Part shown: positions 10,778 to 24,481 of the stretch, one piece after another | Numbering within the stretch: position 1 is the stretch's first letter | Layout: every line of letters starts with the position of its first letter | Assembly: GCA_965240325.2 (NCBI GenBank) | Contig: OZ251235.1 | Location: forward strand, 930,001-994,000 | Length of the DNA stretch: 64,000 bases | DNA from: Rebecca billardiae RCC1528 | Lineage: Eukaryota > Protista > Haptophyta | Reading direction: 5' to 3' | Made by a program: the position numbers and the translations under genes | The notes under the pieces: model-generated | What the model was told of the DNA's origin: nothing | Database searches by the model: none | Seen by the model: only the letters and a program-made list of their open reading frames with translations

Positions 10778-11235
10778 TATCACGACTCAATCACTGACAT
10801 ATGTACACTGTGACTGTGAGTGTGATGAGTATTGATGAGTGATACTGATAGTGATGGCGCATCGATCAGACTACTTATGATTCGATCATCAGTCTTAATA
10901 TTGGCTAATGTAACTGCCTCTGCCAACTCGGTCGGGCGAGACTCGGAACTGGCCGCTGAACGGACAGACGGCAATAGTAAACGGTCTTATATTCTTAATA
11001 ATAACATTAAGTAGCATGACGACGACGCCTCACGCCATCATCTAGCTAAGCTGATGAAGACCTGCCACGGCGCGTCAGGCCGTCACGAGCCTGGCACGGC
11101 TGGCAGTGGCACCTCGATCAGAGTCGAATCAGGCCTGTGCTATGAGCCATAGCCGACGATAGCGGCTGAGCATAGCGGCGCAGGCAGACAAGACGGCAGG
11201 CCTTGCGGCGTCAACTCGGCCGCGAGCCGCGAGGC

Positions 11236-16774: not shown

Positions 16775-17131
16775 TTATGGAGACAGTGGTACTTGGGCGA
16801 CCAGGATGTCCCCCTCAGATGCGCCGTAAGGAACGATTGCTGCCATCTCCCTACCATCGGGGATACTGAAGGCGACCTCGTCACCCGCGCACGTTCCCGT
16901 CGGCAGCGGCACCTGCACCTCCACAGATTCGGCGTCGGACAGCGAGGATGCTGACGATCGCAGGACCGCGCCCTGCCCGAGTGGCACGTTCATCAGGAAG
17001 TGGTCGCCTTCTTGTAGACCAGAGGGCACCGCGACAGCGACTTGTCGTCCATCGGGGAGCACGACCCCCAACATCTCACCGGGGCGCACGCCCAGCGGCA
17101 CTTCGATATCCACATCGACAGCGTGAACCAT
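16775..17131 (-). CDS. Small protein of four V-x-V-P-x-G repeats, unknown function
   Basis: IEVPLGVRPGE, VAVPSGLQEGD, VPLPTGTCAGD, IVPYGASEGD. Confidence 0.65.
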   Translation of the reverse strand: MVHAVDVDIEVPLGVRPGEMLGVVLPDGRQVAVAVPSGLQEGDHFLMNVPLGQGAVLRSSASSLSDAESVEVQVPLPTGTCAGDEVAFSIPDGREMAAIVPYGASEGDILVAQVPLSP

Positions 17132-17293
17132 TCCACCAAGCCGGAAGGGGAGCCTCCTTCGTTTTTGCAATTTTGCCGGCTCTTCCGCTGGTTCCTCACG
17201 CCGGCAGCGCGGGCGGCGGCGGCCGGCGGCCTGGAAGGGCGGGAATCTTACGTGCATCTGAGAGCGGGAGGACCGGCGGACGGATATGTCGGT

Positions 17294-17337: not shown

Positions 17338-17929
17338 TTAGGGGAGAGAGGGCGTATTATAGTCGGATTCTCTCCCCCATGTCGGTTCGCGCCTAGCTTT
17401 GACACTCGCGATGATGAACAGATGTTGCCTGCGTCGTCATATGACACCATTATCCCGTTATTTACCGTTACGCGCTGCGGAGGTGTCCGGTCGTTGTCAT
17501 TATAGGTTCATCGTTGTTTGCGTACTACTGTTAAATACTTGACGGTTCTACTTAACCGTAAACCTATAGTTTTATGTTTAAGCATGCCGAAATCATTCAT
17601 CGAATGAACGATTTGGCGTCCCAAATACCAGAATCTAGTCTGAGTGACTTATGGAGTAACATGCGGCGAAGTTACGGTGAGTACTTCACCCACAAGGCAC
17701 GATGAACCATACTCATAGATGACCGCAGCGGTATTTATCTCGGCCTTACCTCGCATATTGTCTTTGCACACGAGCCTGAAATTACCGCGCTTGGACTCTT
17801 TGGAGTGCATTAGTAATCAGAGTTAACGACGCACACCCTCATCACAAACATCAAACATCTAGCATCCACAGCCCAAGGTCACGGCGACTCCTCCCTCCCA
17901 GGGCGTTGGGGGTTGGTCGGCGCGAGAAG

Positions 17930-20900
17930 ATGCTGCGGCGACACGCGCCGGCGCGCGAACTCGTCCTCATAACAGACCCGGGCCCCGATCCGGATGACGT
18001 CAAGGCGCTCCTGATCGCGGGCACGCTGCACAAGCGCGGCGACATTCAGCTGCGCCTCGTCGTCGCAAACGGTGGCCACCAGGCGCGCGAGCGCGCGAGG
18101 CTCGCGCAGTGCCTGCTCGACGCGATCGGTGTTCGCAGTGTGCCGGTGGCAATCGGGAGCGAGGGCCAGACGGCGTACGAGCCCGTCGCGCACGAGTACC
18201 TGCTCAAGGGCTACGACGCGGTCGATGATGCACGCCTCGAGCCCGACGGGCGCGCGAGCTTGCTTCGGGTGCTCGATGTGGCCGCCAGCAAATCGCTGGT
18301 GATCGTGTGCATCTCGTCGCTGCGCGACCTCGCGGACGTGATTGGGGCGCAGCCCGCGCTTGTCCTGGACAGGGTCGCGCGCGTCGCGGTCCAGGCCGGC
18401 CTCGACTTCGACGAGGCTTCCTCGCGTTGGGTGCCGGACACGTCCGTCAACAACGGCTTCGACCCGGACGCTGCCGCGGCCGTGTACGACTTCTGCTTCG
18501 GGAATGGGCTGCCGCTGACGGTGGTGTCACGGCACGCGGTCCCGCTGCTGCCGATGCAGCTCGCGCGCTCGTTCGCCGAGCGCACCGCCTCGCCCGTCAT
18601 GGCCTACCTCGCCAACGCGCAGTTCCTCGGCCTCCGCGGCCTCTGGCGCAAGCTGTGCGACGGCAAGCTGCCCGCGCGCTGCACCAAGCAGTGGTACTTC
18701 GAGACGTTCTGCGGCGTGGACGCGGCGCGCTTTGCTGCGCAGGGCTTCGAGACGCTCGACGCCACCGCGGACATCCTCCCGCACCTCAACGGCTACGTCA
18801 AGCCGTACGACGTGTGCGCGCTGATGGCCGTGCTGCCGCACAAGCCGGGAGAGGCGTTCGACGCGTGCGCGGTCGCGCCGCCGCGGCTCGCGCCCGGGCA
18901 GCCCGCGGCGGCGCACCGGCTGCACCTCGCTGCTGAGCACGGGATCGACGTGACGCACGTGACGCGGCTCCTCCGCCACGTGTACCACGACATCGTCCTC
19001 GCCACCGTCCCACCGTCAACGGTCAACCCGCGGCTGGGATTCGTGCGCCGCTCGGACCGCTCCGAGCTGCTCCACTCGGCCGAAGACCCGAGCCTGCTGC
19101 AGTGCGTGGACGAGCAGGAGCGGCTCAAGTCGTGGAAGGAGCCGCGACGCGCGGCCTCGGAGAACCCGGGCGCCACGAGTGCCGCGGGGCATGCCCTGCT
19201 CGACGCGCCGCAGATCATCGAGCTCTTCCACCGCAGCCTCGAGCTGACGGGCGCGCAGCTGCAGCACTCGTCGCGCGTCGCGGCGTGTATGGGCATCCTC
19301 TTCTTCATGGGCGCGGCGGCGACGGTGTTCTGGGCGTTCGACACGGAGCCGCCGCCGGGCGCGGGCCGCGCGCACTTCGCGACGCGCAAGCTTGTCGGCG
19401 AAGCCGCCTTCGACATCGCCGACCTCGCCATCGCGGTCGGCGTGCTCGCCCTCCAGCCGGTCGCGTCGCACCGGCGCGCGACGACCGCGACCGCTGCCGC
19501 GATCGTCGCCGCGTCGCTCCTCTTCGCCGTGCCGGCCGTGCCGCAGGCGGCGGAGGCGCTGCGCACGTGGGAGGACGACGACGCGGTGCGGCCGGCTCCC
19601 CGCGCCTGCGACGAGGTGAGCAGCCCCGCCGCATGGCGCCTCGCCCACGGCGTGTGGCTCGCGCAGTCGGTGCTTGCTTACTTTTGCTTCGATCTGTGGC
19701 TCGCGCGCGTCTGGCTCATGACGCGGCGGCACCCGAGCGGCTGGGCGCAGACTGTGCGCGTGCGCGCGCTCTGGTCGGCGTGCATGGTCAACCTCGCGCT
19801 GCAGTCGTGCACGCGCGCGCTGCTCTCGAGCACGCGCTGCGCGAACGCCGTCCTGCTGAACGCCGAGCCCGCCCCGGCCTTCCTGCTCCCTGCTCTCCTC
19901 AGCATGCACGGCGCGGCGGTGCTGCTGTACGCCGCGCTGCTTGCGCCGGGTGGGCGGCTGCGCGCCAAGGCGCTCCTGATGCGGCTGGGCCGCGGCCGGC
20001 CGTCGGCGCGCCGGGTGCACGCGGAGGCGCCGCTCGCGCCGCTGATTGGCTACGGCTCGCTCGTCGCGCTCGAGCCGTCCCGCCTCGTGCCCGAGGCGCT
20101 CCGTGGCATGCGCGCCGCCACACTCGGGCCGCGCACGGTGCGCGCGCTCACGCTCGATGCAGGTGAGCAGTCGACGCCGCAGGCAGGCCGCCGCGGGCGC
20201 GCGGGAGCGGGCGCGGGCGGCGCGGCCTCTTCGCCCGGCGTCACGGGCGGCAAGCTGGGCTCTCCGCACCCGCGCGCCGCGCTCGCCCAGCTCTGCCACC
20301 GCAGCAGCAGCGCCGTCGCGCCGATCTCGAGCGAGCACAGCATCTGTGCGGACGCGCCGAGTGCAAAGGGGGGCAGCGGCAGCGGCGCCGCCCCGGGCCC
20401 GGAGCCGAGCGGCCGCCGCGGCAGCTCAGCCACCCAGAGCAGCCGCAGCAGCTGCAGCCTCTGCTCGAGCAGCCGCAGCAGCAAGCCTTCGAGCCTCAGC
20501 GGCGGCAGCGCCGTGAGCCACAGCGCCGGCGGCAGCACTACCGCCACCACCACGGCCACGACCACTGTCACTGCGATCAGCCCCAGCGGCCGCGCCAAGC
20601 CCGAGGCTAGCCCGAGCAGCCTCGGCGGCAGCAGCGCCCTCTGGATGGGCCGGAGCAGCAGCCGCGGCAGCCCGCTCGGCCCGCCGCCGCTCAGCCGCCC
20701 AGGCAACTCGTCCTTCCTCTCTGACGCGAGCACGCCGCGCTCCGCAGACGGCGGCAGCTCAGTGCGCACGCGCTTCCGGCAGAGGCTGAGCCGGCGCAGC
20801 GTGCGTGCGCCGCCCAGGCGGAGCTCCAGCGAGCAGCTCTCGACCACCATCGTCGACATCGATCACGACCGCGCGCTCACTCCCGATTCTTTCGACGTCT

Positions 20901-21479
20901 TCGTGCTCCACTCCGAACGCGACCCGCCCGCCGAGCGTCTGATCGCGCTGAGCGCGTGGGCGCGCGAGTTCCGCGCCGCGCGCGGGCGCTGGCCGCGCGT
21001 GTGGCTCGACTCGCTCTGCGCCGACCCGATCGTCGACCGACGCGAGCGGCTCGCTCACGAGGTCGTGGCCATGTGCCGCGCGCGCACGCTGCTCTGCCTG
21101 GTGGGCGCCAGCTTCGTCGCGCGCCTCGCGTGCATCGGCCGGCTGCTCGCGTGGCGCGCGACGGGCGGCTCACTCGATGACGTCGAGGTCGTGCTGGTCG
21201 GCGCCGACGCCGCCGAGTTCAGCGCGATCGTCGCGGCGGTCGACGCGTTCCACGTCGTGTACGCCGAGCACACCGCGCGGCCGCGCGCGAGCAGCGCGGA
21301 CGACCAGGGCCCTCTCGTCCACGCCATCGAGCTCGCTGGCGCGCGGCGCGTGAATGAGCTCGTGCACAGCCTGCTGCCGCAAGTGCAGCGCGCGGTGCCC
21401 AAGGCGCTGCAGCGCGCGCGCCCGGCGTGGGCGCTCGGCCGCGCGTGGGTGGCGGGCCTCGGCGAGCCCAGCTCCGACA

Positions 21480-21514
<35 letters not shown>

Positions 21515-21790
21515 CCGTTGGGAGCGGACGGTTCTGGTGACAAGCGGTCGCGTCGTCGGTCCTCGTCGTCGCCGACCAAGCAACAGCCGGCCTCCGAGAT
21601 CCACGCACTCCACCAGCCGCTCCAGCTGTCGCGCCGCGTGGGCACACAGCCGCAGCTGCCAGAAGACGAGCCGACATCATCAAGTGCTCGCTGCAGCGGC
21701 GTGTCCCACTGCAGCCTGAGCGCGGCTGCGCTCGATCACAACGGGCACGGCGCACGTGAAACTTCGCCGTTCCCAGCAACTGCAATCTGA
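17930..21790 (+). CDS. Nucleoside-hydrolase-like domain + multi-pass transmembrane region + Ser-rich linker + TIR-like domain
   Basis: LVLITDPGPDPDD..VVAN..VPVAIG..CISSLRD..NNGFDPDAA..YDVCA (IU-NH fold); ~6 hydrophobic helices; FDVFVLHS..RVWLDSLC..LLCLVGASFVARLAC (TIR-like). Confidence 0.8.
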
Positions 21791-22203
21791 TGCGCTGACG
21801 ATTTCGCTTCGCGGCGGCGGCTGCGAGTGCGAGTCGGCAGCGCCGGCCGCCGCGCGCCAAACGCGCAGCCGCACCGGGAAATGAGCTCGCCGAATGGCGG
21901 TGTTGAGTGTACTAACTACATGCTGACGTGTCGCCTGCAGTGCCGTGCAGGCGGCATCGGGCTGATCAGCTGCTCAGTCGGAGTAGCGGCGAAATAAACG
22001 GCTGCCGCCGCTGGTAGTGCAGGTAGTGGTGAGTACTGAACGTAGCCGACGCGGCCGCGGGGCCCCCGGCCGGCCCGCCCGGGATCAGTCATCATAGTTT
22101 CTGCTGATGCGAGAACTGGACGACAGGTCGGAATGACGACTACGATGGATACAGTCGGAATAATGACGACGATGGGTTTCGGATTGCTCTGGGGACTGTA
22201 CTA

Positions 22204-22611: not shown

Positions 22612-22655
22612 TACAGTTTACTATGATTTAACGTGCACACTTGGTTAAGGCGTGA
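22612..22655 (+). repeat. Short one-ended element, family Y, copy 2
   Basis: tacagtttactatgatttaacgtgcacacttggttaaggcgtga. Confidence 0.9.
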
Positions 22656-22759
22656 CAGTAGCCCTTGTAGGATCAAGCCCTTGCAAGGATGCACCCGGGC
22701 AGGTGGTGAGCAGGCGGCGAGCTGCCGGCCTACCGGTACGGCGCCCGCCCCCGCCGGCG

Positions 22760-24481
22760 ATGGCGGAAGCCCACGCCCGCCGCCTCAAGAACGCGCTCGC
22801 GCGACGCAACGCAGGGACGCGCGGGGTAGAGGTGGTGATCAATTCGTACGCCGATCTCCTCGCACAGCACACTGACCTCCAGCGCCGGCACGCCGAGCTG
22901 CAGCAGGAGGCCTCCGTCCTGCGCCACGAGCGCTCTCAGCTCGCCCGCGACGTCAAGCTGCTGCACGAGAACGAAGCAAACCTCGGCGTGTCGTCGGAGC
23001 ACATCCAGCAGCTGCAGGACAAGGTCGCAGCGCTGCAGAACGAGATCAGCGTCGGCCAGCGTGAGCGAGCCGCTGCCGAGCAGGACGCAAAAGACGCTCG
23101 CGAGGCGGCGGACGCTGCGCGCGAGGCGCAGGCGGCAAGTGAGACAGCCAGGCAGGCTGCGGTCACGGACGCGCACGCAGCCCGCCAGGCGACCACGGAC
23201 GAGCGCGAGACGGTGCAGCTCGTTCGAGATGAGCTCAGCGCCACGCGGCGCATCGTCACCGAGCGCGAGGCGCGCGCGACGCAGCTCGAGGCGGAGAACG
23301 CGCAGCTTCTGGCGCGCTACCTCACGCTCGTGGACGCGCGCGCCGACGCGCTCAACTCCGACGTCGACCTGAGCGAGCAGCTCTCGGCTGCGCGCCGCCA
23401 GATCGAGGAGCTGGTTCGCGAGCGTGGGGCCGGCTCTTCCGGCCCGCCGGCGCCCTCGGCGCCCCTCGAAGGCCTGCGCGATGCCGATGCTGACGCCGCC
23501 GACGCTGCCACCGACCAACTGCCTGCGAGCGCGCCGCGCACGGCAAGCATCGTCCCGGCTGCTGCACAGCGCGTGCACAGCGCTCACGTGGGGGAGGCGA
23601 ACGCTGTGCTCTTCGTGCCCGACGGCAGCGCCGTGCTGAGTGGTGGCGCGGACATGCTCGTCGCGTGCACCGACGCCGCGACAGGCCGCGCGCGCGCGCA
23701 GCTGCGCGGCGCCACCTCCTCCGTCCTCGCGGTGAGCGCGTGCGCACACACGGAGCGCGTCTTGGGCGCGTGCCACGACGGCTCGGTGCGCGTGTGGCAG
23801 CTGGAGACAGGGCGCACGATGCACGTGCTCACGGGGCACACGGCGCGTTGCTTCTCCGCCGTCTTCGCGACCGACGCCAAGCTCGCCTTCTCCGGCGCGT
23901 ATGATCGCACTGTCCGCAGCTGGGACCTCGCGGGCGGCTTTGGCGTCGCCACGTTCGCGTGTGGCTCCAACTGCAACGGCGTCGACGTGTCGCGCGACGG
24001 CAGGCTGCTCGCGTCGGCGCACTGGGACCACGCGGTGCGGCTTTGGGACGCGCGCGCGCCCGGTCACGACCCGGCCGGGTGCGCGCGAGAGCTGGCGGGC
24101 CTGCACACGGCGCCTGTGACATGCGTCGTGCTCTCTCGCGACGGCAGCCAGCTGCTCACGTGCGCGCGGGACGACAGCCTCAAGCTGATCGACCTGCGCG
24201 GGACCGCGCACAGCGTGGTGCACACGCTCACGCACCGGGGCTTCTGCTGTGGCGCCGACTGGGCGCAGGCTTGCTTCTCACCCGACGGCCGGTACGCTGC
24301 GGCAGGCGGCGCCGATGGCTCGCTCTTTGTGTGGGAGCTCGCGCACGCGCGCGCGGTCGCCAGCCTGGCCACGCCGCACGCGGCCGGCGCGGCGACGGGG
24401 GTCGCGTGGGCTCCAGATGGGCGCACGCTCGCTTCCGCGCATAAGGACGGGAGCGTGATCATGTGGGCCGCGGAGAAGTGA
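22760..24481 (+). CDS. ATG16: Autophagy protein ATG16 (coiled coil + WD40)
   Basis: N-terminal helix, coiled coil ending LEAENAQLLARYL..ADALN; WD40 repeats incl. LTGH, SGAYDRTVRSWDL, SNCN, DWAQACFSPDGRYAAAGGADGSLFVW. Confidence 0.88.
   Translation: MAEAHARRLKNALARRNAGTRGVEVVINSYADLLAQHTDLQRRHAELQQEASVLRHERSQLARDVKLLHENEANLGVSSEHIQQLQDKVAALQNEISVGQRERAAAEQDAKDAREAADAAREAQAASETARQAAVTDAHAARQATTDERETVQLVRDELSATRRIVTEREARATQLEAENAQLLARYLTLVDARADALNSDVDLSEQLSAARRQIEELVRERGAGSSGPPAPSAPLEGLRDADADAADAATDQLPASAPRTASIVPAAAQRVHSAHVGEANAVLFVPDGSAVLSGGADMLVACTDAATGRARAQLRGATSSVLAVSACAHTERVLGACHDGSVRVWQLETGRTMHVLTGHTARCFSAVFATDAKLAFSGAYDRTVRSWDLAGGFGVATFACGSNCNGVDVSRDGRLLASAHWDHAVRLWDARAPGHDPAGCARELAGLHTAPVTCVVLSRDGSQLLTCARDDSLKLIDLRGTAHSVVHTLTHRGFCCGADWAQACFSPDGRYAAAGGADGSLFVWELAHARAVASLATPHAAGAATGVAWAPDGRTLASAHKDGSVIMWAAEK

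Follow-up and report, generated by a model that had tools for sequence, protein, structure and literature searches.

An algal membrane protein joining an XopQ-like hydrolase domain to a TIR-fold domain that lacks the catalytic glutamate

TIR domains make NAD+-derived immune signals in bacteria and plants, and, to our knowledge, little is known of how a host shuts such signals down. TIR domains of animals and protists make these signals too (2026 preprint). Most eukaryotic TIRs keep a catalytic Glu and make isomers of cyclic ADP-ribose (cADPR), and changing this Glu abolishes activity (preprint 10.64898/2026.04.20.719644). On the degrading side, XopQ/HopQ1 is reported to hydrolyse the O-glycosidic ribose-ribose bond of the TIR product 2'cADPR to yield ADP-ribose (ADPR), with a Michaelis constant in the sub-micromolar range and near diffusion-limited efficiency (Roth et al., June 2026 preprint, 10.64898/2026.06.15.732069). 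The enzyme does not cleave 3'cADPR, canonical cADPR or nucleosides, and it blocks plant PAD4-dependent immunity as well as a bacterial Thoeris system that uses 2'cADPR; the preprint makes no mention of eukaryotic homologues (10.64898/2026.06.15.732069). We analysed a forward-strand gene in a 64,000-nucleotide stretch of the genome of the haptophyte Rebecca billardiae RCC1528 (the window; contig C18:930001-994000 of a 72-Mb, 41-contig genome; eukaryotic DNA rich in guanine and cytosine, GC) and found that it encodes a single protein of 1286 amino acids (aa) in which an XopQ-like hydrolase domain is joined, through a six-helix membrane module and a Ser-rich linker, to a TIR-fold domain that has lost the catalytic Glu.

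Folds of ligand-degrading enzymes are reused as sensors or timers for ADPR-type or cyclic nucleotide signals within the same polypeptide in TRPM2 with its NUDT9-H domain and in self-limiting CARF ring nucleases such as Csm6; these resemble the algal protein by analogy of logic only, with no relation in sequence or fold. Among bacterial Thoeris systems, those that use membrane effectors (type VI, TIR plus ThsG, with 2'cADPR; type VII, ThsH) follow the same logic of a maker, a sensor and membrane helices, but their parts are separate operon genes with unrelated sensor domains (DUF6650, SLATT), whereas the algal modules lie in one protein. A survey of bacterial Thoeris effectors gave no nucleoside-hydrolase effector, and no PADLOC model was matched by any of the three algal modules at E values up to 1. 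TIR proteins of another haptophyte, Gephyrocapsa huxleyi, have N-terminal membrane helices and no hydrolase fusion (PMC12489294). No description of the hydrolase-membrane-TIR architecture was found, and a full-text search for PF01156 together with TIR gave only the XopQ preprint. The protein is made of known domains in an undescribed combination and setting.

The ORF listing gives one open reading frame (ORF) at 17906-21790 on the forward strand, and from the first ATG at 17930 it runs uninterrupted through 1286 codons to a TGA. The features within it are as follows.

17930-21790, forward strand: whole coding sequence, 1286 aa and TGA, no intron needed
17936-19009, forward strand: XopQ/HopQ1-type nucleoside-hydrolase-fold domain, predicted cytosolic, aa 3-360 (Pfam, NCBIfam and PDB matches)
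17972-17998, forward strand: Asp cluster TDPGPDPDD, aa 15-23, in which Asp20 aligns with XopQ Asp120
18800-18811, forward strand: KPYD, aa 291-294, in which Asp294 aligns with XopQ Asp399
19205-19942, forward strand: predicted six-helix membrane module, aa 426-671 (model, hydropathy and charge)
20033-20056, forward strand: juxtamembrane motif LAPLIGYG, aa 702-709, family-wide, just past helix 6
20135-20884, forward strand: low-complexity linker rich in Ser, Ala, Gly and Arg, aa 736-985, with 58 Ser in 250 residues (23%)
20885-21409, forward strand: TIR-fold domain, aa 986-1160 (model and structure searches)
21125-21145, forward strand: LACIGRL, a degenerate WCxxE(L) motif, with Ala1067 for Trp and Arg1071 for Glu
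21410-21787, forward strand: C-terminal tail of low complexity that contains a poly-Asp run of 12 residues and a Ser-rich, basic patch

This layout confirms the four-part architecture (hydrolase, membrane helices, Ser-rich linker and TIR-fold domain). An earlier note, made from the letters of this DNA, had described one uninterrupted ORF with a nucleoside-hydrolase-like N-terminus and intact Asp cluster, about six transmembrane helices, a long Ser-rich linker and a TIR-like domain without the catalytic Glu; the results reported here agree with it on each of these points, and its coordinates were right to within a few tens of bases. The protein is no singular fusion, since its family is large: in this genome the TIR profile has at least 157 matches.

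XopQ/HopQ1 from Xanthomonas, Pseudomonas syringae and Ralstonia (PDB 4KL0, 4P5F, 7JLU) is the closest solved relative of the N-terminal domain. This domain passes the gathering threshold of Pfam PF01156 (IU_nuc_hydro; 37.8 bits against 34.2; aa 23-221 in the numbering of the TTG-start ORF), and it matches the NCBIfam XopQ model NF041355 at E 1.2e-30 and 106.6 bits, over profile positions 48-355 of 402. When we searched PDB sequences, 304 residues aligned to the XopQ chains 7jlu_B (1.1e-22), 4kl0_A and 4p5f_A at E values of about 1e-22, whereas inosine-uridine nucleoside hydrolases of Crithidia and Leishmania matched at 5e-5 or weaker; XopQ scored 84 bits as compared to 25 bits for ordinary nucleoside hydrolases. 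By sequence, the domain is much nearer to the XopQ/HopQ1 branch than to ordinary nucleoside hydrolases. In both the algal domain and XopQ/HopQ1 there are the DPxxDPDD cluster, the NNxxD motif of the ribose site and, towards the C-terminus, a YD that supplies the second catalytic Asp. With the residue offset derived from the 4kl0 alignment, Asp20 and Asp294 correspond to XopQ Asp120 and Asp399, residues of the catalytic and Ca2+ site, and the XopQ variants D120N and D120N/D399N are inactive (preprint 10.64898/2026.06.15.732069). Across 43 family sequences D16, D20, D22, D23 and D294 are conserved at 93-95%, and none of these residues, nor N174, N175 or D178, varies in an alignment of 26 sequences, stand-alone relatives among them. 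Because the Asp residues are kept here and conserved across the family, the hydrolase domain looks catalytically competent. XopQ is a soluble, monomeric secreted bacterial protein with a secretion region and without a membrane or TIR part, whereas the algal protein has both of these parts; its hydrolase fold begins about 10 aa past the Met, with no XopQ-like N-terminal secretion region of about 80 aa.

The same 'DPGPDPDD' XopQ-like subtype is found in the stand-alone soluble proteins P0077 (EukProt EP00747, Dinoflagellata sp. TGD), P0048 and P0064, so this type of hydrolase also exists unfused and outside haptophytes; P0077 carries an N-terminal EF-hand pair. Scans with DPGPDPDD-type patterns, a motif that would miss XopQ, gave no confirmed relative of the algal-type hydrolase in viral contigs or in bacterial and archaeal genomes.

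As judged from its predicted model, the C-terminal domain has a confident TIR fold; the earlier note had named a lack of any TIR or flavodoxin-like fold here as the outcome that would overturn its reading. The model, built from an alignment of 26 homologues, reached a predicted local distance difference test score (pLDDT) of 89.7 and a predicted template-modelling score (pTM) of 0.85. When we used it as a query, all 50 matches listed by Foldseek and all 50 entries listed by VIA-align were TIR domains; in the latter search RPP1 came top (Z 11.2, 145 residues, root-mean-square deviation 3.7), followed by RUN1, AbTir, SPARTA, MyD88 and SARM1. The catalytic TIRs (RPP1, RUN1, SNC1; SARM1; AbTir; SPARTA; Thoeris ThsB) have the same fold, with Z of 9-11. 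Sequence searches gave far less: neither the TIR part nor the membrane part of this protein had any Pfam match at E values up to 10, the Pfam TIR models included; TIR_2 was matched by two of 26 family C-terminal domains (best E 0.008); the family profile matched the TIRs of TLR15 and SIGIRR weakly (E 0.1-0.3); and a PDB sequence search with the TIR part gave only noise. A HET-domain identity (PF06985) was considered and rejected, since the model was matched by one of 26 family members at E 1.2 and not by this protein.

The family consensus LxCxxEL, in the alpha-C helix, was aligned by a profile search onto WCxYEL of a TLR TIR. Catalytic TIRs and most paralogs carry this C-x-x-E-L helix motif with the catalytic Glu, whereas in this protein Arg1071 (CGG, 21140-21142) occupies the Glu position and Ala1067 stands where many paralogs have Trp. 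Because Trp and Glu are lost while the fold and core residues are kept, we read the domain as a probable non-catalytic assembly module. It lies C-terminally in a six-pass membrane protein, unlike catalytic TIRs, which sit with NLR (nucleotide-binding leucine-rich repeat), SAM/ARM or Argonaute partners. Receptors that have no catalytic site are described as domains for protein-protein scaffolding (10.64898/2026.04.20.719644). The non-catalytic adaptor TIRs of animals likewise have a TIR fold without the catalytic site, and the assembly or scaffold role that we propose is alike; they differ in origin, and the loss here is recent and falls within a family that otherwise keeps Glu. A complex prediction for the hydrolase and TIR domains scored 0.00, was run without controls and counts neither for nor against binding.

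Between the two soluble domains, an AlphaFold2 model of aa 401-721 (41-sequence alignment) reached a pLDDT of 82.5 and contains six long helices, with hydrophobic cores at aa 450-470, 486-506, 517-537, 577-597, 613-633 and 652-671. Hydrophobic segments cluster at aa 450-680, and six such peaks are present in most of 40 full-length homologues. The predicted inside loops hold 16 Lys and Arg against 3 Asp and Glu, and the predicted outside loops hold 6 Lys and Arg against 10 Asp and Glu. Because there are six passes and no signal peptide, both soluble domains are expected on the same side, and the charge distribution fits an N-in/C-in arrangement in which hydrolase and TIR are both cytosolic; this prediction bears on the earlier note's question of whether the two domains share a side of the membrane. 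Most paralogs carry the motif LAPL[IL]G[YF]G after helix 6. For the membrane module, the matches of a wide VIA search were all generic, either BAR-like or with long helices (Z no higher than 10.7, where about 13 is needed for helical proteins), and an Atlas feature search gave nothing informative (score at most 0.79). The microsatellite (GAC)13 at 21475-21513 encodes the 12-residue poly-Asp run of the tail.

The family is large and pavlovophyte-specific. To describe it we used 20 loci for the census of architecture, and 30 and 12 loci together with public representatives for the census of the Glu. A hydrolase lies upstream of the TIR on the same strand in all 20 full paralog loci, as in this gene; in about half of these 20 the hydrolase part is split over reading frames, presumably due to introns. 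The earlier note had suggested searching algal proteomes for the same architecture, and a word-based search gave 40 proteins of 730-1930 aa, including those of Diacronema lutheri, Pavlovales sp. CCMP2436 and Pavlova gyrans (EukProt/MMETSP). BLAST showed an N-terminal hydrolase and, close to the C-terminus, a TIR-like domain in most of these 40 homologues, and because several of them (Pavlova gyrans and other MMETSP entries) are transcripts marked complete with both domains, single mRNAs with both domains exist in relatives. The three-module architecture is far beyond chance, since all three modules are conserved in dozens of homologues. An exhaustive search of 1.84 billion representatives gave 801 TIR relatives at E at or below 1e-3 and 129 at or below 1e-10. 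The Glu is kept in 18 of the 30 best genomic copies (consensus LxCxxEL), and 123 of 171 rows that cover the Glu position have it (170 public representatives and the query); the share of copies with Glu is thus about 60-72%.

Some family members or possible members depart from this order. Among the public matches there are membrane-helix and TIR gene models that lack the nucleoside hydrolase and have no other Pfam domain; these may be partial models. The protein P0024, with an apparently permuted order (membrane helices, TIR, hydrolase), may be two tandem genes read through and is not used as evidence. On a Logan contig (SRR30664517) from an alga with 66.8% GC, L063:8001-12406 holds an uninterrupted ORF with five membrane helices, a Glu-bearing TIR, an XopQ-like hydrolase and a helix; past a frame change near 10841 follow more helices and another TIR-like domain, in which His takes the place of the Glu. 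L063 is either two tandem genes read through or a protein with two membrane-TIR units flanking the hydrolase (TM-TIR-hydrolase-TM-TIR, TM standing for transmembrane helices).

Within the family, loss of the Glu in this gene is shared by a clade. A search with its own TIR separated 12 copies, this gene included (E at or below 2e-42, 51-74% identity), from the rest (E at or above 3e-36, about 43% identity). All 12 lack both Trp and Glu, with Arg at the Glu position in nine and Gly in three. In a quick IQ-TREE maximum-likelihood tree these 12 form a core clade with an SH-aLRT support (Shimodaira-Hasegawa-like approximate likelihood ratio test) of 96; their sister is a copy in which Gln replaces the Glu, and support for all 13 as a group is 99. 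The Glu is also missing from copies scattered over other parts of the tree, indicating several independent losses in the family. The Glu-less clade retains 29 positions that are conserved family-wide, and its own differences are the Glu position, the Trp position, P1045V, Y1047A and also C1049. Two other genes of the clade with a readable hydrolase keep DPGPDPDD, NNxFD and KPYD. Among the 171 rows that cover the Glu position, the only other Arg-type sequence was a fragment of 208 aa with 99.5% identity to a paralog from the same genome, so the Arg-type clade is seen only in this species; its absence elsewhere rests on the exhaustive search, since a word search with the TIR region gave two proteins only.

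The ratio of nonsynonymous to synonymous substitution rates (Ka/Ks) against the closest paralog (62% identity) is 0.30 in the hydrolase domain, 0.41 in the TIR domain, 0.66 in the membrane module and 0.92-1.05 in linkers and tail; over aa 721-985 the linker evolves about neutrally, with a Ka/Ks of 0.92. In this closest paralog, L045:1912-5418 (C15), the hydrolase Asp cluster is directly followed by an insertion of some 40 aa, in frame, which is possibly a short in-frame intron read through. Near-identical Glu-less paralogs sit on different contigs (L025/L054/L055 on C17, C7 and C1; L026/L056 on C17 and C3), and the clade has therefore been duplicated and dispersed very recently.

Taken together, these data lead us to propose, tentatively and with confidence a little short of even, that the protein faces the cytosol and there hydrolyses or senses cADPR-type signals made by TIRs, with its own TIR serving as a non-catalytic assembly module. 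The idea of a maker coupled to a breaker or sensor comes from the finding that an XopQ-like domain is tied to a TIR on one cytosol-facing membrane protein; the data themselves establish the domain identities, the residue states, the size of the family, the clade and signs of constraint, and we infer the substrate, the oligomerisation partners, the immune role and the role of the membrane module. In the family at large, a Glu-bearing TIR would convert NAD+ to a cyclic-ADPR-type signal, and the XopQ-like domain would bind and hydrolyse that signal, as XopQ does with 2'cADPR, and thus could act as a built-in off-switch or sensor. In the product of this gene, the dead TIR would bring the intact hydrolase to TIR assemblies or membranes, and the protein may break or sense the signal without making any. 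The earlier note had suggested two roles for the hydrolase. Its 'different N-glycosidase' is probably the wrong chemistry, because XopQ is reported to cut an O-glycosidic ribose-ribose bond and not an N-ribosidic one; its other suggestion, that the protein processes products of active TIR paralogs, gains real support from the XopQ type of the domain, from the reported hydrolysis of 2'cADPR and from the Glu kept by most paralogs.

Several observations weigh against the proposal of a hydrolase or sensor of TIR-made signals. The hydrolase domain misses the equivalog cut-off of NF041355 (106.6 bits against 500 bits), so it is only a distant relative of XopQ; judged by its score, it belongs to a distant XopQ branch and is not an orthologue, and it could act on another substrate. 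The TIR of a green alga makes 3'cADPR (10.64898/2026.04.20.719644), which is not an XopQ substrate (10.64898/2026.06.15.732069). TIR profile matches in the window include no Glu-bearing partner gene adjoining this gene. The membrane module has no fold relative in a Foldseek search of the PDB (best E 0.11), and its matches in an ESM-Atlas shape search all have TM scores below 0.4. Finally, deeper pairs within the Glu-less clade give TIR Ka/Ks values of 0.6-0.9, which are uninformative since Ks saturates near 0.5-0.8 in this GC-rich genome; for this reason we call the constraint only moderate.

The main rival to the proposal sees the protein as an effector whose membrane module is gated by the hydrolase domain: the XopQ-like domain would be mainly a receptor for a cADPR-type signal, its change of conformation on binding would open the six-helix module, or assemble it, as a channel or pore, hydrolysis would be a timer, and the Glu-less TIR would only cluster the protein, much as in TRPM2 with NUDT9-H or in membrane-spanning Thoeris effectors. 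We consider this unlikely. XopQ holds ADPR in an enlarged active site and closes by a large movement once ADPR binds (review PMC8910321), TIR systems of bacteria frequently combine membrane helices with a domain that binds the signal (type VI Thoeris, with 2'cADPR, among them), and the six-helix module and LAPL[IL]G[YF]G are conserved across the family; however, the near-invariant catalytic Asp residues argue for turnover and not only binding, and the module resembles no known channel or transporter, its best matches being generic long-helix proteins. A non-immune role, in which the family would provide membrane-anchored enzymes that serve the metabolism of NAD+, ADPR, cADPR or nucleosides and calcium-type signalling, and the TIR would be an ordinary domain that either cleaves NAD+ or acts as a scaffold, seems to us rather improbable. 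It draws on the stand-alone 'DPGPDPDD' hydrolases, including a dinoflagellate protein with a fused EF-hand, and on canonical cADPR being a calcium messenger (also 10.64898/2026.04.20.719644), but the at least 157 matches, the recent dispersed duplicates, the recurrent loss of Glu and the fast linkers form the pattern of conflict-driven receptors and not of housekeeping genes.

The lost Glu itself could be read in two further ways. The Arg-type TIR might still be an enzyme through other residues, or might have gained a ligand-binding or catalytic function that involves the conserved Arg; Arg is present in nine of the 12 clade members within a conserved VGRLLAW motif, and the clade has its own conserved substitutions (P1045V, Y1047A, C1049). 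We hold this to be quite improbable, because a change of the Glu abolished activity in every tested TIR cited in 10.64898/2026.04.20.719644, Gly stands in for the Glu in three members of the clade and none of the 12 core-clade members retains the Trp. Alternatively, the gene could be a decaying paralog on its way to a pseudogene, with Glu loss as simple degeneration without function, as might be expected of a large family that sheds members and has lost the Glu several times independently. This pseudogene reading was rejected on the Ka/Ks of 0.30-0.41 in the hydrolase and TIR domains, as against about 1 in the linkers, and on the supported Glu-less clade; with an ORF intact over 1286 codons, intact catalytic residues in the hydrolase and a Glu-less state common to a 13-member clade that is still duplicating, we give it very little credence.

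A wider picture, which we offer as doubtful, is that pavlovophytes run a TIR network of more than 100 receptors with native XopQ-type hydrolases, in which Glu-bearing copies would make a 2'cADPR-like signal and the Glu-less clade, this gene included, would serve as quenchers, decoys or sensors that take part in the same assemblies. If this were true, the specialisation of the XopQ fold for TIR products would have arisen, or would also exist, in eukaryotic immunity and would not be only a bacterial weapon. Where XopQ activity first evolved is a question that the algal family raises; the family also suggests an endogenous design of maker plus breaker (or maker plus sensor) with the Glu-less clade as a natural split of functions, and it gives an entry point to the immunity of haptophytes, a group of ecological importance that is under viral control.

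Around the gene, an in-frame leader without stops begins at 17780, upstream of the first ATG, and GC rises from about 55% just upstream of the gene to about 73% within it. A look-up of RNA sequencing runs covering 17600-22100 came back empty. Many long overlapping ORFs (up to 440 aa) occupy other frames on both strands of window positions 17879-21860; these look like by-products of the GC content of about 73% and not genes. Upstream, an ORF of 160 aa at 16775-17257 on the reverse strand contains internal repeats of a 'VxVPxGxxxGDxF'-like pattern and matches no Pfam model. The downstream neighbour at 22652-24481 on the forward strand is a single uninterrupted ORF that encodes an ATG16 coiled coil and a WD40 propeller, resembling autophagy protein 16.

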